A stretch of DNA of 61,655 bases, the filler included, from Choristocarpus tenellus KU-1152 (Eukaryota; Protista; Phaeophyceae), in assembly GCA_964200185.2 (NCBI GenBank). It is 9 parts of 9 records of this genome, joined end to end, with 100 filler letters (N's around TTAATTAATTAA, not from the genome) between each part and the next. Parts side by side here need not be neighbours in the genome. Positions count along the whole stretch, not along the records: positions 11,104 to 25,598 come from CAXNAD020001174.1; 8 more parts are not named here. One strand, 5' to 3'. The translations under genes were made by a program, and so were the position numbers. Shown in pieces: positions 11,104-25,942 of this stretch (its first letter is position 1; each line of letters opens with the position of its first letter). Under the pieces are notes generated by a model that made no database searches, was not told the origin of the DNA, and saw only the letters and a program-made list of their open reading frames with translations.

Positions 11104-12002
11104 ATCTTAGTGTAGACACCCCCCCCCCCACATACTTATGTCATATGTACAACAGAATGGATAAAAAATGTTGTCAATTTAAAGGTAACATAGCACTCTC
11201 GTGTGGGAGTCCTTCATGTATATACATATACATACAGATTTGTCCTACTAGCTCCAATTTTGCCATACTTACCTAGCATAGTAGTCTCTATTGGGGGTTC
11301 TCCACAGTTGGGTACCTTCAAGTTATACTTTGCTGAAACTAAAGGCGGAGAGATGGATACTGATGTCTATTATTGCAAACACCCCACCAACACTCTCATT
11401 CCGTAACAAAAGGAATTCAACCGACAATTCAAAGATGCCCTTTCTGCCTAGCATTCCAAAGTAAAAGAGATACTGCCATATCTATCTACCTAAAGACGCC
11501 CCTTCACAAGGGTTACTACCACAAAGAATAGGTAAAAAAATGTAACTTTTGCTCACCGTGTTGCACTTTGCAATAACAGATTGGGTGGGCAGTGTCCCCA
11601 AAGGATGCTACTCTGTTAATAATTGTGTACGTTCCCTGAGTTCAAACCCCGTCAAAACCAGACCTTTTTTTATGGACATACTATTTGGAAGAAAATGTAT
11701 GATGTGTCAACACACAGGTATCGCCAAGACAAATGCATTGAACCCTTTGCATGTAACAAAAACTACCAATAAATTGGATCACATAATAAATCACCAAAGT
11801 CTTAATCATGTCAATACATTCAACTCACTCTTTAAAATGTAATATCTTTAGTTACACAACGTACAGATATTAACCCATAGATTGCGACCAACAGACTCAC
11901 TACTGACACTGGATGATGTAACTAACATTCCACATGGAATTTTCATTATCCACAAAACATCATCTCTTCCAATTAGGGTAGGCCAACCTACATAAAACTC
12001 AC

Positions 12003-15000
12003 CGAAGAGATGGTTGGAGGTCCGGTCAAGGAAATGCATATCACTGAGGTTACCCAGCTCCGCCGGAATAGTACCTGATAATACGCAAGTACAGTGTTAA
12101 ACAGATGTCTCATGGTCGAATCACAATATTGCAGTGGTGTATTTCAATGGTACACTGTTGTTACATCAGTGGGTTGATCTGACAAACAATGGCAGACAGA
12201 GTACAAGGCAAGATAATAAAATTTTGTACATACATGAGGTATTTGTGGTTTAGGAAGGTCTTGTCAACTTAGCTACACTGTGAAGAGAAACATATCAACC
12301 TTACAAGAAAGTAAGGGTAGGTCGGAATTGGTACTTGGCGTTATTCTGCATTTTTTTTTCTTTGTTGACTATACATTGTATCACAGACCATTCACAGAGA
12401 GAAGGTTCATATTGATTCCTTCTCTTTTTTGTTGATAGTGGCATGACACTCAGAAAAAAACAATATAGGTAGGTAGGGGTATGTAGCGTATAATATATTT
12501 GGAGACAGTAACAAAAATTCAACTCACCCTCCACTTCATTTAGGTTGGACCACATATATTTTGAGAGAATTGAGTTATGTTCACTGTACAAAAGAGCTAA
12601 TTTCATGAGAGGAAAATCATTTTCTTACTTGTGTGTTTAAAAAAATAATTTCTTTTCTAGACCTCCTATCGACTACATATATATTCACTCAGGAGGTTGG
12701 CCGTTCGGGTTGGGAATGGATAGGGAACGAAAATTGTAGATGGAGGGTCTGAGAATAATAACCGCTATCCATATCTCCTATTATGATACCCAAGTGTATC
12801 TTTGAAATACACTATTATGACGGGAACCTCAATAAAGGCTTGTATCCTAGGTAAGCTGGGCAAAACTGTCATTAATAATAAAATTAAATGTAGAACCTCA
12901 TAGGGGGGCGATGTGCGGATTAAATAATCTGGTACAATATAAAGAAGAAATTGAACTGTTATACTTTTAGTTCATTATCAACTACATTTTTTTGTTCTAT
13001 ACCCTTTCAGTTCCATCAATTGAAAAAAAAAAAAAATTCCCTGTTCACAACCCCAAAACCTAATTTGTTCCACATAGTTCGAGAATAAAAAGAGCAATGG
13101 AGATCAAGCAAAAGAACATCCTTCCAAACCAGAAAGGGAATTGAGGGGGTTGGTATGTTTTTCAATCTGAGCTATTGACTACAACCTTAGATTGGAGAAA
13201 TTCAAATCGGTTGTGTACTAAAAAAAAGAGGTAAGTTAAGGATAGAACTTCCTTCTTTTCACTTAAATGTTTTGTTTAAATTGATATTATGTTCCATGCA
13301 TTAATAAAATGATAAAAGAGGTAAATGATAGAAGCATTACAGAATCTATCATTTTCATTCCTATATTTTACATGTCACTAGAGAACCAAAGTTTTACTAG
13401 AGGTACACTAAGTGTAGAAATGACAATTTATATTTGTTCAACCAGCAACACAATTATACATGGGTTAGGGTTAGGATATGTGGTTGATAAATTTGAAGGA
13501 CCTGAACAAAAAATAGTAAACGAGGATAGGGAAAAGCGAACCGAATGGGTTTAGATATTATAATTTAAACTGAAGGTGAAATGAGAGAATGGGTAAGTTG
13601 AGTGTAAAACTGACTCGTGAACATGAGTGTTCAACAATTCGTTTTGTTTTTAGTTCACCATATTATGGTGGTCGATGGAAGGATGAGGGACGAGTATCAC
13701 AAAAAAATCGTTTTTATGGAAAAATATTGAGGGTAGGACCAGATTCTAGCTGTGTATTCTAAATGTACACCTTTATTGCATCAGAGGGTTGAATTGACTA
13801 TGGTAGGCAAAGTACAAGACTAGAAAATACGGCACATGGTTAAATTTATTAAGTAATGTGAGTATTGTACATGAAAAAAATTATAAAAGGAAAAACTGCA
13901 GAAGGTAGAGTATTACGAGAGCACTGAGATTGCCAAGCTGCACCGGTATAGGACATGATAGTACGAAAGTAAATGGTTAGAGAGATGTCTCATGGTCAAA
14001 CACAATATTTGGTTATGTATCCTAAAAGGTACTCTACTACTGCATCGGTGGACCGAATTGTCAAAGGTAGGGAGAACATAAGACAAGAGAAAAAGTATTT
14101 ACAGTGTACTACAATAATGTCATCTTGACAAGGTAGTTTCAGGATTGGGGGCCTGATTAAATTTAGTTTGAAGAAAGATTTCATTGAAGGTAGGTCCAGC
14201 ATATTTTTCGAGGTTTGTAGAAGGAAAACGAAATAAAATTATAAATTGATACTTTTGTGACAATTTCCATACATTTTATCAATGATTTTCTTCATTTATA
14301 CTTGTTACATTATTCAGAAAAAAACAAACAGTACAACAAGAAAGAGCGATATTAAAAAGAATAAATTGATATTTATTTTATGGTTCTCCACTTTGTTGTA
14401 AACAATTAGGAAGGGTCTTCAATTTAGACAAATCTCTACTGCAATATATATAATTACTCTACTCATCCTTGCTCATATTTACTGAGTTCAAACCTCTTCA
14501 ATGCCAAACCTGCTGCATGGACACATTATATGTACCAAAAAGGCTGAAATGACAACAAAGGGTACATGAGGTTACACCACAGTAGTTGCAAAACAATAGT
14601 TGATAACTCACATGTATTACAGAAGAGGTCATACTTGATAGACTCACCACACAGCGCTCAGAATTGTAACATCCACAAAGTCAAACTACTATTCAATTCG
14701 GTATTGGTGTTCCCCACACAGCATTCTTTCCATTCAACAGAAGTAAATCAAGAAAAATAACACTCACCAGTAAGCTGGTTATTATAGAGGTTGAGCTTAG
14801 AGAGTGCACTGAGGTCACCCAGCTCCACCGGTATATTGCCTGAAAATATACGGGTAAAGCGTTATAGAGATGTATCATGGTCAACCACAATATTCTTGTA
14901 ACGTATCCTGAAAGATACTCTACTACAGCATCAGTGGACTGAGTTGTCAAAGATAAGGAGAACATAACACAAGAGAATAAAGTATGTATAGTGTACCACA

Positions 15001-18000
15001 ATAATGTCATCTTAGCCAGAGGGTGAGAATGAACGTATGACCTCAAAGGAAAGTTAAGGTTACAAAAATAATTGACATTTAGGAATGTGGAAGCTTCTCT
15101 ATTTTTATATCTTGTTTTTGAATATTTTACTTTATCACAAACCAACCGCAGTTGGTAGTGTTGATCACTTTCATTATCTAGGTTCTATTTATTGTGGTAG
15201 AACATTAATATAGATGAAAGTGGACGCGTAGTTAAATGTGACATACTAATAAATAAAGCCATGATGAGATTTTTTTGTGAGATTTTTTTGTCTTTTTTGT
15301 TTATTATTTTAAAATAAATTACAAAATCAATCAACAGGTAGATCTAAAAACTGGTACATCAAAGGTAGAGCTAGCCTTGTGAATATTTATATCACGCTTC
15401 TCCATCTTACAGCATTTTGTAGCATAACCAGTTTTGAGGGTTAGGGTTAGCGTTAGGGTGATACATATATATTATAAATATATATCCTCTTAATATATTC
15501 TGGAGAACAAATTTAGTGCACATAGTTGTCCTCGCTCAAGCACTAAAAATCAATGATCAAATGCAAGAGTATGACATTAGGAGCAAACCTGATAGTGCTC
15601 AATCGCAGGATAATCAGTTCAAGTTCAGATGAGTGGGGTGTAGGGAAGGGGGTTAAGGAAAAATAGTGTGGGTAATAAGATGTGTATATGCAAATGGCTC
15701 AAGTTATCCAAAGTAGACCATGGTGGTAAGTACCACTCCAAAGGAGACACCAAAAGGGGGGAGAGGGAGGAAGATTGAGAAAGAGTAAGGGACGACTGCT
15801 GTTATGCCATTAACATCTCCAGTAGCTTTAATGTCTCTATATGGTTATTAGCTAAAAAGGATTGTGCTTAATCTATTTCTTGATATATTCAAAACATATT
15901 GCAACTGCAGGTGCACTCAAAGAATGGGTATATAACGGGTACAACTGACTTCCTGACATCAGTCTTCAACAATTTGTTAGGCTTTCGACTTCACCAGTAG
16001 CACATTTTTTACTACTTGGTCTTAGAGTGATGGTGTTGGTAAAGGGAAGCGTTTGTGAGGATTAATGTTTATTTTTATTTCTTAGATTTTTCTAATAATC
16101 AAATCAACAGGTGAATTGAAAAAATCAGGTAAGTTCAAGGCAGAAATGACTAGCTGTAACTGTTCAATGACATGCCTCCACTTTGACTACATCAGTAGTT
16201 GTACAGCTTAAAGGTTGGATTAAGGTTAGGGTCATGCAAAAAGAATAAAAACATGTTCTAAGGTTAGGGTTAGAAGTTAATACAAACGGAAGGGATGGAC
16301 TATGTCAAATAAGGGGAGATACCAATGAAGGAAAAGAGAGATGCCAGGGTCAGGAATACAAGGAAGGAGTGTTTCTACAGCGAGGAACTCAGGTACAACA
16401 TTTGTGGAAGGCTTAGCCTGAAATGTTATGACCAACTAAAAACTATAAGGGATATATACCGGAGACTACCTAGTCTAGGGGGATTGGTATATTTTTTGTA
16501 CGATGGAGGAATACATTGAATCGAATGCCAATACAAGGATAATAAAAAGTAAGGCATCAAAGTAAAGTACACAGTATATATGGTGCATCATAGTCTTGTG
16601 AGGTATAATAGATTTTGTGTAGAAGTAGATGTAACTTTAAAATGATGCAAGTGGTGGTGTCAGGACTGTTCTTTGTTTGTATTTCACTGTAGATTATACC
16701 ACAAGACAAAAAAGAGAGTTTCTACATCTCCCTTTTCAATTATTTTTACTTTCTGGTAGAACAACCGTCCAACTTAAGTAGAAGAGGGTAGGTAGGTAGG
16801 GTTAGGATTAGTTTGTACATATAAAATTATGTAATTCGCCCCCAATATTACAATTTTAAAAAGACTTAAAAATAAAACACAATAAATTAGAAAACAATGA
16901 TCCCATCTTGACCCCCTATCTACCTCTTCTTCACTTACAAATTGCTCCAGATACTGCCCTATCCATTGAGCAATACTACCATAATAAAGTAATGAAAAAG
17001 AGTGGGAGTAACATTTGCTCTCTGTGTCGCACTTCAACACAAGAGATTGGGCAGTCCCCACACGGTTTAGAGATGTTTTTCCCGGATTCATAAATTATTA
17101 TTCTTGTTCTTGATAAAGACAAGAGAATAAAGGGTGTATAGTGTACTATAGTCTTTCGTGATAGCCATATTTTGAGAAAGAAGAGTTGGATGTTCAAAAG
17201 AGATGAGGTTACGGGATGTTGACAAATTTGAGTGTTTTTAAAGCTGTTCTAAGTTATCCTGTTTTTAGGATGAATTGTCTCACCAAACAATTACATTTGG
17301 TATAGGGGTTCATTCATATCATTTTTTATTTTGATTTATTTATTGGGGTAGAAAACTCTAATAAAATTGAAGTGTGTAGGTTGGTATAGATGACATAATA
17401 TAGTTGTAATTAAAAAATATATATCCCTCTCTCTTGTCTCCTTTATTCTACTTCACACATACTTCAACATAATTTAATAATATTTGTTAAGATTAGGAAA
17501 AAGAGAAAACATCATGATTTTATGCTCTTTGCTATGTTCTTCGAAGACCAAAGAAGGAGAGCTGTTTATTGCCGTTGTCGAGACTTGTTTTCAGATATGT
17601 TGTTATTGATGTTCTTGTCTTATGTTGTCCTCCAACTTATATTGCCACTAAAACCCACTCATCCTTCTCCTCTACTCCTTAACTTTCAAAATCAAAAACG
17701 CAAAGACAGTGGAGTATGATTAAACTTCAGGGAACTATCAACACAGGTAGGGTGCTGTAACTCAAAAAAACCAAAACAAAACGCACAGAACAGAGAGGGA
17801 ACACCGAGCAAGTTAGTCCTCAACTACTATGCGTCTGGGTTGTGTTCTACACATGCTGCACTTAGCCATCCATTCACAGTTCGAGCCTTGCTTCTTAACG
17901 CCTAAAATGGGGAACGTAACCTCAAGAAACTGGCACCTCAATCACCTTGTGACACACAAACTCCTCTGTAGGAGTCGTGGGAACCTCTTTTACCTCAATC

Positions 18001-21000
18001 TCAATTACGGATACAGCTAAAACCAACACGAAAGATGTTACCTATTTCGGGAGATGGTTACTGTGTTGCTCTTCCTTCAAAGCTCTTCCTCCTCGTTTTT
18101 CGACTTTCTATTTCAAAGCTTCGTAAAACATAAATTGTCATCTCTTCTTCTTCATGTACTGCTGGCGTCCTAAGAGCATGGGCGATACTTTTCAGGACTT
18201 CAACAACAACAACACATCCGCGGTTCTCACCAATAAAGAGTCAATCATCTTTCAGCTTCCTCTTCAAGAACTGAAGTCAAAGTTTCATCTCACGCCTTTC
18301 TTTCTTCCTCGTCACAGTCACCTCCATTATTACAGCAAACAATTACTCGGCTTTTCGCTCTTATCTTTACATTCAATTACATTAATTCCACCTTCATCCC
18401 ATTTCAACTCGCTATTTGATCACCTTCTCAGCGTCAGCACTCCCCCGCATAGCTTTAAATACAGTACATGCAATAGCGACAGAACCCTCCTCCCTGAACG
18501 CTGCACAATACAGAACCAAAACTCCTTTACCGATGCTGCTTCGATTATTCTTATCATCAAATCCTTCGCAACTATCTTCAACTGTCTGAGATCTCTTTCG
18601 CGCACTGTTCTTTGGTTGATAATATGTCTTCCAAGAGTTGCACACTTTCAATACCACATATCTCAACAATCACATACATGATTGAGGTGCGGTTTGTCGC
18701 AAAGAAGGACTTCTACGTTACTCTACACCATCCATCGATACCTTTCCTCATATATTTTGTAGTCCATGATATGTGTAAGTGAAACACATCGAAAACAGTG
18801 AATAAAAATACCGACGATAAAAGTTACAACAAACATCAGATACGAAAGCTACCCTTTTCTATCGTAGACCCATGTATGAAACGCTTGACACCAACCATTG
18901 CTATGTCATGATGACAGACGTAGTGAAAAGTTCGATTCTATTAACAAATTCCCGTTGTAAAGAAGATCAAGGTCACATCATTCGTATAGCCTGTCACAGC
19001 CCCAAAGAATGAAAAATACGAGCCTCATATTCAGACCTATCCCTACGTACGAGTATTGTTATTGACTACATTTGTGTCTTCGGGAGAGGAAGAGAACGAG
19101 AGCTGGGCAGGGACTTGAAATTGTATGCCACAGGTCTGAAAGAATTAAAAAACATCTCTATTTCCCCACACAGCATTGTTATGTATAGCTCTCAAATGTC
19201 CAATTATGGAAGACCCTCGATAAAACTACTATATTAGGAAGATGGGGCAAAAATGCCTCCAAAAGAAAAACGCACTAAATGTGTGTAGAGTATCTTTACA
19301 TCAGAGTGTTATTTTGACTAAATGATAAGTTACTTGTTTCAAGTCAAATTTATGTTTGGTGCTTTATAGACAGCAATCGTTATTCTTCCCTGGTAAATTC
19401 AAGCCATTCAACTAAAGCAAATCAATCTACCAATGTCAAAAACTCTCAAACTATTAATTTAGAACAAGCACACATTTCTTTTTAACTTTGACTCCACTAC
19501 ATGGGAGGAAGATAACTTGGCCACGTAAAAGAGATGAGATATTAAAGGGGGGTGAGGAGAGGGAAAAGGAGGTAATGTTGATGTCATTTGTTTCCTCTTT
19601 TATGTTGAAATTGTGTCCATCTACATCTTGTACTATATACCCTCTCGACAAATTCAATTAGTGTGTGTATAGAAAAGAGTCAAGGTAAGTACAATTGACC
19701 TCTTGTCCTATATTAAATTTATATTTACTGCATTTTACTCTTCTCTCTGGCTTGAAGTATCTGTGAGGGAGGGTGGGCGGGGGGGTCTACACCAGGGTGT
19801 CAATTTGGGCCCTGACCAGGATAATTGACAGTCACCACGCCTCCCCCCTTACATACTTTGAGCTTTTAGCTACAAGTATAATTCTTAATTTGGCGTTTTG
19901 GTAGACATTGAGAAAAAATTAATCTACAAATGTTGATATTAGAGAAGTATATAATTGTGCTGGTTTATCTCATTTTCTTCTATTTTGGATTTATTTTGTC
20001 TACACACCACAGAAAGACTTGGGATTATTGGGAAGAGGCATGTTCAGTGTAGTAATGACCATTTCCTCATGTGCTATTGGTGAAAATATCTTGTATGGGG
20101 TATGGTCAGTATATAGACTTAATGCATGAAAACATCACCGGAATATTGGCAAAAGAGAAATGCTTAGTGCCAAGCTGGCTACACGTGGTTCCTAATTTAG
20201 CTAAATACAGGTTTGGTCACTCTATTTTATTCCATTTAAAAATATATTCAAACAGCAGGTGCACTGAGACGTGGGTATGTCGAAGTTACATGTGTCTTTT
20301 TGTAGACTGTGATCAACAAATACTACCACACACCAGGTACTGCAGGTCAACAGTAAACAACTTTCCCCACAATGACAAAATTTCCATCAAACACAGCTTT
20401 CTCAATATAGCAGTCTCTTGCCGGTGATAAGTGAAACATGGAACACATAGAGTTCATCTTTTGGATGGACTTGACTTTTTGTGGCTGGGGTTATTGTATC
20501 CATTCTTCCCATTATCTTCTTCTCGGTTGTCTATCCTTGGGAAAAAAACAATATTTTGTTTCAATCAAAATCTGTCTGGGTTGAAAATAAGCAATTACTT
20601 CGAACCAGAGCTAGCTTTACGTGGATTGTTTCTTTATGTCCCTAGTACTAGTACAACATATAATCACCAGGGATGAGGTCAGGGTGGAGGGTTTACCTTA
20701 AATATATTATAATTGATTAAAACAAAAAAGAGGTAAGGTTATGTCTTGGCTGCCATAACGTAAAACATGTTTGTTTTGTATTATTAGACTTACTGATTTC
20801 CAAAAGTTTAATAGAGATGGATCAAAACAAATATACAACTTCAGGGTACAGCTGGCTGTTTAGAGATGATGTTTTACGCCAAAGTTGTTGACAACATTTT
20901 TAAGAGTTTACAGTTACGGTTTGGCAATAGGGGTAGGGTTGAAAGATGCAAATCAAAGTAGATGTCAGGAAAACGTTTAACAACCTACCATTGCCATTTG

Positions 21001-24000
21001 TTTAGAGGTCGTTAACGATTGCACATCTGAAAGATAAACCCAGATACTGCTACATACAGAGCAGTGGATAGTAGAAAACAAGCCCATATTCTTCACCCAC
21101 AATTTTTTTATAAAAACATGCAGTTAAATAATATCGCCTCAAACCACAGAATGAGTCTCTTATCTAAATTTATTTCCTTTCATTATTCCATCTGTTCTAA
21201 TCTCACAGTTAAAAAAAGAGAAGTTCTTGCCATACCTCCCTACCAATGGACTTACCTATCTATGCACGCTTATTATCATTGGGTACAACACACTTAATAC
21301 TTCTAGGTACAACATACGCCAGAAAATAATTAAAATAAAACTAGAATAAACATTTTGCTTGCTGCACTCCTCACCACAGGAAAAGATTCTCACGAATGAC
21401 AAATTGATGGAAATGTGGTACAAGAATAGAACCATCTCATAAATACCTACAAACATTCTGTAACCTTCGAACCCCTTTCATATCAATACCAGACCCTTCT
21501 TACGCCAGTTAATACTTTTATCAACTAGGGTGTTATGACAAGACAGGCTACAAGAGAAGTAGGATTGTGTCTGACAATAGTTACACATATCCACCTCCAT
21601 GTATAGAAATAGCTGTGAATAACTTCAGACCATATATTAGCTCTGCTGTACCTCCGGAAGGGAGCGCATAGAACCAACTACTAAACCTGGAAATATTGAG
21701 ATCATAAAACTCTCTCAAACACTACTACTTGCACTACAATTTACACAGATCACCTTAAAGGTGTCATTCAATAGACTCCTCAACAACAACGATGACCATT
21801 TTCTACTGTTCCAGTGAAAATAATTTATGATGGGTAGGTTAGGCGAAAGAAGTTATATATTTCGAAATCACCAAAGTATAGTCAATAACTTAGGGTCAAG
21901 CTAGCCACACTGGGTAACTCTTACAGCTAGAAACAGTTTTGGTTACTCCATCTTTTACCATTTTTTGGAAACTATTCAAACTGCAGGTGAACAAAGGGAA
22001 TGGGGAGGTTGAGGTTACATCTCACTCCTTGTGGTCGATTTAAAAAATTTGGTATATTTTTTGTTGACCAGTGTCACATTTGGTACTGGTTTGGATTGGA
22101 CTATTGGTAGGTGAAATAATATATTTGATACAAACTAACAAATAAAAGCAAACCAAGATTTTCACAGACACATCTTTTTTCCTGCCTATACACCAAGCAA
22201 AACCAGTAATAAATGTGATATTAGTAAGAAAAAAACTAAAAAAACTGTTGAAAACCAACCACAGTCAGATGTACGCTCAACTTACCCATTTATTTTTTAC
22301 TTTTTACATTTATTGAACAATAAAAAGAAGCGGTAAATGAACACTTGAGTTCAAAGTAGAGCTGGATTGTTATTTATATGTATTTCGTGATATTCCATTT
22401 TGTTTCATGTTGTAGCTGTACCAATAATAAAATCATAGTTTTGCGATTAGTTATACGGGATGGTTGGTGTTAAGGTTGTACTGAAATATTAAATAAAACA
22501 AAGAATTTGCATTCTCCACAAACGTTCTCTCAAGCAGGGTAAATAAACCAATAATACACTCACCGGTGAGCCTGTTGTGCCAGAGCCTAAGGTCCTTAAG
22601 AGCACTTAAGGTTCCTATCTCCACCGGTATAGTACCTGATAATACACAAGTACAGTATTATATAGTCATCACATGGAAAAACACATAATTCTTGGAGGGT
22701 ATTCCAATGGTACACTACTATTACATCAGAGGGTTGAATTGAAAGAGTGAAAGACTAGATAATCACATCTTGCACATGTTCAAAGGAATATGTTGTGTAG
22801 TCAAGGTGGAGGGTTTACCATAAATAATTTTTAATTGATGTAAAGAAGTTTATTATTTGACAAGAGGGAAGGTTATCTCTTGGTTGCCTCCATGTGTTAT
22901 ATTATTTCTGCAATTGGACTTTATGGATTGTATAAGAAATAGCAGGGGGTTGGTCAAACATATACACCACTTCGGGGTAAAGCTGGCGGTTCAAAGATGG
23001 TGTTATATATTTATTTATTGGTGTCATTTTAAAAATAATAATTTGATTCGGTTTGAGGGATATAGGGTTAAAAGATGTATATCAAAATAGAGTTCAGACA
23101 AAAGTCGAGTCAACCTACATACCATGGCTATCTTGTTGAGAGGTCCTCCACAATTGAACACCTCACAAATACACCTACCTACTGATAGAGCAGTGGAGAG
23201 TAGAAATCAAAGCTTAAATTCCTCACCCACAACATTTCTGTCAAAATATGAAGTAAAAAAAAAAATGGACAAACATAAGGCTCTGGTGTATTTCAAGGGC
23301 ACACTATGCTTTCAACAAATAGAATGATTCGACTATGGAAGATACGAGTGTAATATCAGAAGGGAATACAATGTTGAAGAATTAATGTAACAAAGGTATC
23401 CATGTGAGATGACCATGTCATGTTAATGAGACTATGCTAGAGTAGGTTTTAGAACCTATCAATATCATACATATTCGTGTTTCGCCAAAATTTTCATGCA
23501 AACAATAGAGAAGTTGTTGGATCGCACTTCACCTTCCACACACACTACCCTAAACAAAGTAACTTACAAATATATTGAAAGTCGAGGGCACTGGCACCTA
23601 GAGGTCGGTGTCTTAGATAGCGTTTATCGCAGTTACTATGTCAATCTTGGGTAGTGAGGAATACTCGTAAATGCAGTTTCAAAAGGTAGTCAGAGTATAA
23701 CATTTACAAAATATTTCGTAGGACATACCATACTAACATTTACTATACTTCTATGAGAAAGTATAATCTACTTTAATATAATTTGATAGCACATACTTCA
23801 TGGTTAACAACAGACCTTCCCCACGGACACCAGTGATTCTTTCGCACACCCGTATTATTATCCTGCCTCATCTCAAAAGACCTAGGATCTACCACCTACA
23901 ACTCTGCCAGCTAAGAAACTCTCGGGACCACCCACAATATATAAACTCAGAAGTTACCAAGAAGCGTAACAAGTGGCAAAAAGATCGAGGATGGAGATGA

Positions 24001-24580
24001 AGTATCAGCACCTCTCCATCATGGATGTGTCGACCCAGACTAGAGACTCTACGATGTACTACATTTTGTGTTATATTTGCCATGCCCAATCAAAACACAC
24101 AATTTGTTCACTACCTCACACATAACCCATCACCCTATCATCATCACCAAGAGGACGACATCAAAAAACGTGCATAACTCCTATCCCATGAGAGGGGGTT
24201 GTATGGTAGGTGTGATCCGGTGTAGACAAAGACACGACCGCCGAGAACGTCTACTCCCTTTTGTTTCAGATGTCAGCATAAGGTAGATTAGAGTGGTGGA
24301 GATATGTGATGGGTGCTCTTTATCGTGGATGAGCCAGTTACAAAGTACATCTTAAAGTAACTCCGATATTTAGAAGTTGTCAGCTGGTGCACTTACCCTT
24401 AAGGTTGTTGAACGACAGATTGAGTTCCACTACGCGTCCTTCCGAGTTGACCACCACGCCATCTCGTGCACCTAAGTCAGGACTATCACTTTCCCATCCA
24501 TCTTTTCGATACCACGACGTTCCACCCGTGGAACGGAATAGGACATCCAGGGCATTCTTGTCGACCGCACGTCCCTCCAA
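12003..24580 (-). CDS. Brown-algal-type LRR protein (N-terminus like LRR-ROCO/LRR receptors), one LRR per 72-bp exon; partial
   Basis: N-cap exon 24580-24397 (DKNALDVLFRSTGGTSWYRKDGWESDSPDLGARDGVVVNSEGRVVELNLSFNNLKG). Three exact 72-bp phase-1 exons with CAG/GTGAGT ends: 22635-22564 GTIPVEIGTLSALKDLRLWHNRLT, 14839-14768 GNIPVELGDLSALSKLNLYNNQLT, 12074-12003 GTIPAELGNLSDMHFLDRTSNHLF. No ROC/COR domain is visible in the contig. Confidence 0.9.
13901..13954 (-). pseudogene. Decayed LRR pseudo-exon
   Basis: Reads (G)PIPVQLGNLSALVILYL; acceptor is CAT instead of CAG; the NxLTG end and donor are missing; carries the same upstream intron flank as the intact exons. Confidence 0.85.
17780..19150 (+). 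mobile_element. Possible decayed LTR-retrotransposon gag relic inside an LRR intron
   Basis: Coding-like C-rich tract; 18686-18730 reads GAVCRKEGLLRYSTP, resembling a degenerate CX2CX4HX4C knuckle. Confidence 0.25.
19749..19864 (-). mobile_element. MITE family C, short degenerate copy
   Basis: GAAGTATCTG...CATACTTTGAGC ends; GGGTCTACACCAGGGTG is the reverse complement of the 7760-7780 interior. Confidence 0.65.
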
Positions 24581-25942
24581 CTGGGAAGGTACTGCTCCAC
24601 AGCATTCGAAGAACAAAGTCATTAAGTAGGAGAAGCGATTGAATTTTCCCCATATATGGAGATTTCTATTCTCCGAACACTATAGAGTAGTACCACTACC
24701 AGTACTCTCCCACCTCTATGCTGGACACTTTCTATTGTTACTTACAAGACTTCAAAGACTAGTATGCTTGTCACTCACCCACTCCATCCATTATTGCCTT
24801 CGAGTCCCAATGTTCGACTTGGTTAGCCTTCAGAATTAGGTCAATTAGTGTGAGATGGCATCATCAACATGGAACACGTATTTGTCTAGGGACAAAAGTT
24901 TCTATGATATACCTACCCCATCCATGTTTCAAGGTACAACAATTCTTCGCAAACAAGAGACTAGAAATGGTGTTTAAACTGACTCTCTCTGTCATACAAA
25001 AAGTGAAATGAAGGAGTAAGAGCGAATTCTCAATCAAAAGTCCTTTTCCTTCAATGTTCCAGAGTCTTTGTGGCATATTTTACACTCCAAGAAATAATTA
25101 GAAATACCAAGGTAGAATCATATTGTCTTCCCAGATTCAGCAGGTGATTCAACAAAAAATAAAAAGCCTCATATTTCCAATGCAATGAAGATACGAATCC
25201 TTAGCCTTGAAGGACTTGAAGTTCTGACATATATTTGCTTCTATAATATTCATTCTCTGTAAGGGTCGTTGTCTGAACCAGTCTTTCCAAAATGAAAACT
25301 TCCTACAGTACCTACACCTATTTTATACCAAATATTATATACCAACCCCATTTTTGTACCTCTTTTTTGGACATACTAAAAAAAATAGGCTTTTGTACCG
25401 GAATTCTCGGGTGATTTGGTACAGAATCGGAGAGATATTCACCCCAGTTTTGCGCGCGCGTAAAAATTTCTCGCGCAAAGTGCCTTTCTTCCTGAGTCAT
25501 GACCACACAGCAGTACAGTAAGTACGTTGCTGGTAGGGGAAGAAAGTGGAAGCCATGCCTTGTGCCGCGGGAAACCTCTGCAAGATGCCTTCAAATACNN
25601 NNNNNNNNNNNNNNNNNNNNNNNNNNNNNNNNNNNNNNNNNNTTAATTAATTAANNNNNNNNNNNNNNNNNNNNNNNNNNNNNNNNNNNNNNNNNNNNAT
25701 GTACTACACCCCTGATCCCCAACAATTTCCATGTAAGGCTTACGCTTCAATGATAAGCAGTTCACAATACTCCCCCCCCCCTCCCCAAATCTCCTATGCA
25801 CACAAAACGGATCACAAGACAAATCTTCAAAAAGTGCAACTACATTTACCTCTTCCTCCCTCTCCCTTTCCTGCATCCCCCCGTCCTACCCCCATATACG
25901 CCTGCTGTGGCGAGGCCGCTTTCCTATATCTCCACCGCTCAC

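Follow-up and report, generated by a model that had tools for sequence, protein, structure and literature searches.

What kind of gene is carried on the minus strand of contig C1174 (CAXNAD020001174.1) of Choristocarpus tenellus, where exons of 72 nucleotides (nt), each encoding one leucine-rich repeat (LRR), lie kilobases apart? The window analyzed is a stretch of 61,655 nt in which parts of nine contigs are joined end to end; positions 11104-25598 are the whole of contig C1174 (14,495 bp), from an assembly of 164 Mb in 27,310 contigs. The contig is AT-rich (GC content 0.33-0.44). Because this resembles other sampled nuclear contigs of the assembly (0.35-0.48), the contig fits its genome. The type I LRR exon, a 72-nt exon with the consensus GxxPxxLxxxxxLxxLxLxxNxLx, was first described in LRR-ROCO genes of Ectocarpus (Zambounis 2012, PMC3341825; Teng 2024, PMC11378527), and in other brown algae this design has been described as a route to diverse candidate receptors. 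The host of C1174 is, as for type I loci, a brown alga (Phaeophyceae): rbcL and cox1 proteins of the assembly match NCBI records of C. tenellus exactly. Our answer is that C1174 probably carries the 5' part of a minus-strand gene of this brown-algal type I kind, most likely of a non-ROCO class made up of a cap and LRRs ('cap + LRR').

Both strands were scanned for AG, 72 nt in open frame and GTRAG. Six candidates were obtained, of which three are LRRs that share the minus strand and a single frame. These are the only intact LRR exons on C1174 (216 nt within 12.6 kb):

22635-22564, minus strand: LRR exon D, 72 nt, phase 1-1, donor GTGAGT, translation TIPVEIGTLSALKDLRLWHNRLT; cassette with flanks at 22771-22430
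14839-14768, minus strand: LRR exon C, 72 nt, phase 1-1, donor GTGAGT, translation NIPVELGDLSALSKLNLYNNQLT; cassette at 14987-14619
12074-12003, minus strand: LRR exon A, 72 nt, phase 1-1, donor GTGAGT, translation TIPAELGNLSDMHFLDRTSNHLF; cassette at 12225-11860

Exon A is the last exon ahead of the contig end at 11104. All three acceptors are pyrimidine-rich (ttatcag or ttttcag), and the exons would be spliced as drawn. Bases 3-71 of each exon encode 23 residues, and the final G together with the first two bases of the next exon forms a Gly codon. A Gly codon split after its first base is equivalent to phase 1 introns on both sides; the same split is named 'phase 2' in PMC11378527 and is phase 1 by the usual convention. 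Since both ends of every cassette fall at one and the same point within a Gly codon, its gain, loss or skipping keeps the frame. Exons D, C and A are about 70-80% identical in nt sequence to one another and to cassettes on at least 10 other contigs, indicating homology and not chance matches. A 1131-bp stretch with exon C is 80% identical to contig C21514. The three exons fit the type I consensus, as do 20 exons of the family. This exon anatomy is observed directly, and it bears out much of an earlier account drawn from the sequence without database searches (the sequence-only reading). That account had made each LRR one 72-bp exon of the same phase with a GTGAGT donor, which is true for D, C and A, the donor of the cap exon described below being GTAAGT. 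It had also described a conserved framework with exposed positions that differ in every exon, and its examples (KDLRLWH, SKLNLYN and HFLDRTS) are all present. Its remark that the six-frame open reading frame (ORF) track misses the gene was correct too: the ORF list contains the cap exon only, in the right frame.

All protein and domain searches were made exon by exon. A 23-position profile built from 19 single-exon translations matched the ectodomain LRRs of FLS2, GSO1, MIK2 and SERK repeat by repeat (best E 9e-33, FLS2). The full-length alignment of this profile with individual plant repeats indicates that each exon is one plant-type LRR, with the 24 residues and the pattern LxxLxLxxNxLxGxIPxxLGxL of the plant-specific class. 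A Pfam scan of single 23-residue exons gave no match, such lengths being below the reach of Pfam.

Upstream of exon D, a longer exon is predicted to encode the N-terminal cap:

24622 or 24580 to 24397, minus strand: N-terminal LRR cap exon, ending in phase 1, donor GTAAGT at 24396-24391; module …LDVLFRSTGGTSW…GVVVNSEGRVVELNLSFNNLKG

A pyrimidine tract is common to all copies of this exon, and the AG that would start an exon at 24580 (phase 0) is present in seven of eight. The cap exon so defined (24580-24397, 184 nt) has the same plan as the cap exons of Ectocarpus, and 24580 is also the coordinate given by the sequence-only reading. The exon has 32 matches in its own genome, eight of them at 63-69% amino acid (aa) identity, and 2343 relatives in a representative protein library, the best named one being from Ectocarpus. 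This nearest named relative, CAM9491818.1 of Ectocarpus sp. 12, is 56% identical in a BLASTP local alignment, and Pfam gives it LRR families only, with no Roc-COR. Judged by eye, the N-terminus of the C1174 gene looks unlike a signal peptide. A PDB sequence search with the cap exon returned only chance matches to beta-lactamases (E>0.5). Cap-bearing ORFs on contigs C10563 and C2037 were set aside as a different family, with the usual Trp.

Several side observations concern the cap module and its surroundings. Just upstream of the cap exon, 24650-24830 is the best conserved stretch among four paralogues (identity 0.92-0.93 vs 0.78-0.88 for the cap exon) and includes a GTAAGT some 130 nt ahead of the conserved acceptor. 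The stretch could be a promoter, or else a 5' untranslated exon followed by a short intron. Partial copies of the cap exon were seen in clusters on contigs C4368 and C4242 (66-81% identity over residues 8-49, each copy with an in-frame TGA). They occupy both strands within a few hundred bases and look like an array of tandem or inverted fragments. Giant LRR proteins of the representative library (up to 3,800 aa) carry up to 20 copies of the module per protein. The ten top library matches looked up were mostly ENA records, plus one NCBI/ENA and one Ectocarpus record. Among five cap-module proteins submitted to Pfam, a bacterial Ig-like domain was found in one, and trypsin-like plus bacterial SH3 domains in another. 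The cap module is thus not confined to algae.

The unit of duplication consists of an LRR exon and about 150-180 bp of intron on each side, and this joint duplication of exon and flanks is a direct observation. When a DNA profile built from 13 cassettes was run over C1174, it found six sites, all on the coding strand: three full, one truncated and two flank-only. Remnants of cassettes in the introns are as follows:

13954-13900, minus strand: pseudo-exon B', in a truncated cassette at 14093-13903; acceptor CAT, not CAG
13740-13829, minus strand: cassette relic, upstream flank only, without exon; profile positions 11-100, E 8e-18
23265-23342, minus strand: cassette relic, fragment of an upstream flank; homology to paralogues stops at 23264
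17110-17200, minus strand: distal part of the upstream flank left by a lost cassette; at this place C10197, a collinear contig, carries an intact 72-nt exon

The first 55 nt of pseudo-exon B' read PIPVQLGNLSALVILYL, and its last 17 nt and donor have been replaced. Together with the three flank-only relics, all on the coding strand, it represents the inactivated exons expected of type I loci. At the 23265-23342 site, paralogues on contigs C2481, C3575, C15003 and C9403 have a whole irregular first cassette. Near 17000, a suspected fifth cassette could be aligned over some 90 nt of distal flank only and was not accepted as an exon, and a suspected 56-nt exon at 11545-11600 proved to be part of a duplicated downstream flank.

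The contigs of eight close paralogues can be aligned with C1174 at 66-83%, in exons and introns as well as in upstream DNA. Differences of entire cassettes set at least eight paralogous loci apart, as seen around one large block:

14984-21121, minus strand: 6.1-kb block, absent from contigs C2481, C15003, C11987 and C3575

The homologue of 21778-21122 adjoins a C-type cassette in C2481, C15003 and C11987 and lies within about 180 bp of one in C3575; these four contigs are without a D-type cassette but have the irregular first cassette. Over much of its length, the block runs collinear with the interval between cassettes in C10197. On contig C559, seven intact exons of the same type extend over 15 kb at a spacing of 1.3-3.1 kb, indicating that long introns are normal for the subfamily. 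Introns are 1.7-7.7 kb at the C1174 locus and 1.3-7.7 kb across this long-intron subfamily, and the C1174 gene may well continue past the contig end. The sequence-only reading had held that any cassette can be skipped, added or reordered in frame. The symmetric phase does allow gain, loss and skipping, and paralogues do differ by whole cassettes. Reordering found no such counterpart: no antisense or reordered cassette was seen on C1174 in the DNA-profile scan.

We then compared the exons with their own flanks. All 13 cassettes found by DNA similarity have an exon of exactly 72 nt without a stop, 12 of the 13 have intact splice sites, and their intron flanks carry about 13% gaps. Exposed codons were chosen a priori as residues 14, 15, 17, 19 and 20 of LxxLxLxxN, numbered so that the split Gly is residue 1. 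Column-wise mean pairwise identity over the first 13 cassettes was 0.45 for exposed codons, 0.76 for the framework and 0.72 for flanking intron. The difference between exposed codons and intron is significant (Mann-Whitney P ~1e-5) and was reached in 0 of 20000 permutations; the hypervariability was seen again when C559 was taken by itself and when all 19 cassettes were pooled. By the Nei-Gojobori method, the ratio of nonsynonymous to synonymous differences (pN/pS) was 0.40 for the framework. For the exposed codons it was 0.93 (pN 0.56, pS 0.60), a saturated estimate. The cap exon gave 0.46 (P=4e-4; three independent pairs, with the paralogue carrying an in-frame stop left out). In this subfamily the framework is thus under constraint; the exposed positions are, at the least, free of it, and they change faster than the adjacent intron. 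The comparison of exposed and framework substitution across paralogues, which the sequence-only reading had proposed, accordingly yields a constrained framework and hypervariable exposed codons, but not an exposed ratio above 1. The same concave-face positions have been reported under positive selection in Saccharina and Ectocarpus (sites 14, 16, 18 and 19 of PMC11378527, which are residues 15, 17, 19 and 20 here).

Several observations weigh against a live gene of this kind, and part of them would suit a decaying, untranslated copy, be it a pseudogene or a mere reservoir of LRR cassettes in repeat-rich DNA. One intron is 7.7 kb long with an old dispersed repeat inside. Splicing and expression of the exons are predictions from the sequence. 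The cap exon is at most 52% identical to any protein of the 1.84-billion representative library; with no library protein above this value, no gene model of this subfamily was seen. The start is uncertain as well. An ATG at 24622 is private to the C1174 copy, the paralogues having Thr codons there, and an ATG directly follows the conserved AG in four of eight paralogues, where C1174 has TTG. Either the private ATG is used, or an upstream exon lies off or near the contig edge, or the start has been lost. The first cassette of C1174 is truncated relative to the paralogues, other broken cassettes lie in the introns, and the core of the last exon, A, is irregular, with Arg at a core Leu position and Phe at the last position. 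The exposed pN/pS is about 1, not above it, a value at which 'unconstrained' and 'positively selected' are inseparable. Conservation of the cap exon (nt identity 0.82) is below that of the surrounding 1.9 kb of non-coding DNA (0.87), one paralogue has an in-frame TAA, and the paralogue contigs carry ORFs that look retroelement-like by eye and only one or two LRR exons each. LRR-only loci have, moreover, been described as a possible reservoir (PMC11378527). By contrast, the three exons of C1174 keep their length, frame, both splice sites and most framework residues, whereas the flanks gained indels, and the ratios for framework and cap exon indicate purifying selection during divergence of the family. 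Decay is accordingly a doubtful, though real, possibility, and a cap + LRR gene that is presumably live is the reading we prefer.

As the sequence-only reading had likened the locus to the ROCO LRR-GTPases of Ectocarpus, we ask whether the gene could encode the LRR portion of an LRR-ROC-COR (ROCO) GTPase, with the ROC-COR portion past the contig end. The brown-algal type I LRR exon of that comparison is confirmed (PMC3341825, PMC11378527), and ROCO genes are its best-known carriers (same sources). On contigs C3396, C1068 and C945 of this genome, Roc domains follow arrays of 72-nt LRR exons with a cap module, and the end of C1174 is only 0.9 kb past the last LRR exon in a subfamily with introns of 1.3-7.7 kb. 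However, none of the 46 matches to PF08477 (Roc) in the genome is on C1174, on the eight paralogue contigs or on 10 cassette contigs, several of which reach 7-10 kb downstream; the search of other contigs for ROC-COR that the sequence-only reading had suggested thus found no Roc beside the close paralogues. Cap modules of the Roc-linked arrays are only 39-43% identical to the C1174 cap, and the 56% match over the best local alignment with the cap exon comes from a non-ROCO Ectocarpus protein. The cassette of the Roc-linked arrays is also of another type (xIPESLGNLSAL…S), recurring at intervals of about 650 bp and with flanks about 89% alike. Type I exons are, in addition, common in non-ROCO loci, with 46 such loci in Ectocarpus and 15 in Saccharina (PMC3341825, PMC11378527). 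PF16095 (COR) had no match anywhere in the assembly in a six-frame, exon-by-exon search, a blank so complete that this negative has no power. ROCO identity is therefore unsupported, and we consider it unlikely; the non-ROCO cap + LRR class is retained as the more likely one.

Among the other products looked for on C1174, no Rfam family and no tRNA were found. No protein family scored above cut-off in 15 of the 17 listed ORFs of at least 70 aa, and no kinase domain was found in the 15 scanned ORFs of this size, small exons and off-contig parts being outside the reach of that scan.

Symmetric exons permit any combination, and one may ask whether the cassettes serve programmed diversity within an individual, through rearrangement like that of variable lymphocyte receptors (VLRs) or through regulated combinatorial exon choice. 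The idea was raised in PMC3341825, and splice variants of LRR exons in Ectocarpus have been reported (PMC11378527). The relevant measurement is that cassette flanks are more conserved than synonymous sites: identity was 0.668 for intron flanks vs 0.582 for framework third-codon positions in the subfamily of C1174; for the Roc-linked arrays the corresponding values were 0.894 and 0.802 (P=0.015). The exons seem to change faster than their own introns, silent sites included. Splicing constraint, concerted evolution, exon mutability or estimator bias could each account for flanks that outconserve synonymous sites. That the flanks are functional parts of the cassette, guiding combinatorial exon choice or serving as recombination substrates to diversify the LRR face at the level of the individual, we hold to be highly improbable. 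If true, it would place a diversification system already in one of the earliest-branching brown algal lineages. As for programmed diversity as such, nothing in the sequence demands it, antisense or reordered cassettes are lacking on C1174, and three exons on a contig leave little to combine. According to PMC11378527, neither somatic recombinants nor a dedicated recombinase has been reported. It is extremely improbable, and we return to a cap + LRR gene that diverges between loci.

The following explanation would account for such a gene. One cap-module exon would be followed by LRRs, each from one 72-nt phase 1-1 exon, and the gene would have grown and shrunk through duplication and decay of cassettes. 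Selection would hold the LRR framework (Pro, the Leu positions and Asn), and five solvent-exposed codons would be free or pushed to vary, giving paralogues with different concave faces. The product would be a protein- or ligand-binding module, of the non-ROCO class as in the nearest Ectocarpus relative, and might act as a receptor.

Two further features lie in the introns:

about 17557-18980, strand not assigned: old dispersed repeat in the 7.7-kb intron, GC 0.40-0.42, strong GC skew
20678-21131, minus strand: internal duplicate (67%) of the intron segment 22800-23261, upstream of cassette D

At least 25 contigs carry the dispersed repeat, at 63-70% identity, and it accounts for the local shift in composition on C1174; its ORFs gave no family matches. 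Its presence at the collinear place in C10197 indicates that it is older than that duplication. As side observations, a small inverted-repeat element resembling a miniature inverted-repeat transposable element lies just downstream of cassette D (21999-22111 and 22181-22290), with further copies in other introns (13568-13660, 15903-15996 and 20163-20291). Eight telomere-like motifs (GGTTAGGGTTAGG, up to 2 mismatches) lie in introns on the plus strand of 13463-16812, all antisense to the gene, against a chance expectation of 0.28; 0 of 100 shuffles reached eight.

How does the locus compare with known systems? By analogy only, it resembles the VLRs of lampreys, in which LRR modules are cassettes assembled somatically from incomplete ones, and the LH/gonadotropin receptors, whose LRR exons are in phase and of similar size (cited in PMC11378527). 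Plant LRRs (the ectodomains of FLS2, GSO1, MIK2 and SERK) are alike in that individual repeats of solved structures align end to end with the single-exon profile. Unlike the exons of C1174, plant repeats are not encoded one per exon, and they belong to receptors that also have a signal peptide, a membrane span and a kinase; C1174 showed none of these three.

Within C. tenellus itself, the Roc-linked arrays share 72-nt phase 1-1 exons, GTGAGT donors, a cap module ahead and hypervariable exposed codons with C1174. They differ in their period of about 650 bp, in units about 90% identical save for the exposed codons (pN/pS 1.61), in the sequence type and acceptor context of the cassette, and in sitting directly upstream of a Roc ORF. 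On C3396, for instance, LRR exons at 6123-3465 are followed by a Roc ORF at 2529-2170. Identity at the first and second positions of exposed codons is 0.46 in these arrays, and the hypervariable patch is much sharper than in the C1174 subfamily.

The nearest named relative, CAM9491818.1, is a 22.8-kb gene in which every LRR is a 72-nt exon, including a AIPVELGKLGAL… repeat, and in which three cap modules are separate exons of 190, 187 and 184 nt running from phase 0 to 1. In contrast to C1174, it has three blocks of cap and LRRs, linker exons and a 540-residue non-LRR tail, and its cap has the usual Trp where the C1174 subfamily has Arg. Two exon queries from the tail found no match in the Choristocarpus assembly. 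LRR-only loci of Saccharina japonica, compared by description only, are likewise non-ROCO, with shuffling 72-bp exons and a proposed role as reservoir (PMC11378527).

The type I loci of Ectocarpus agree with C1174 in having one LRR per 72-nt exon, in consensus, codon split and inactivated intronic exons, and in hypervariability at the same concave-face positions. C1174 departs from them in showing no ROC-COR and in having introns of 1.7-7.7 kb instead of a dense array. LRR exons on the non-coding strand are reported for 19 ROCO loci of Ectocarpus, whereas C1174 has none, and GC is 53% at the Ectocarpus locus whereas C. tenellus is AT-rich, with 35-45% GC in sampled contigs. The C1174 locus is therefore the published brown-algal design and no new kind of system, and the immune-receptor role is hypothetical in the literature too. 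What it adds is as follows: 1) the design of one LRR per 72-nt exon is present in C. tenellus, outside the four species analyzed so far (Ectocarpus, Saccharina, Cladosiphon and Nemacystus), which pushes it back towards the base of the brown algae; 2) the alga has two forms of it, tight Roc-linked arrays and a long-intron subfamily not linked to Roc that includes the C1174 locus; and 3) introns used as a yardstick for exon change offer a second look at the evolution of these genes, with the control built in.

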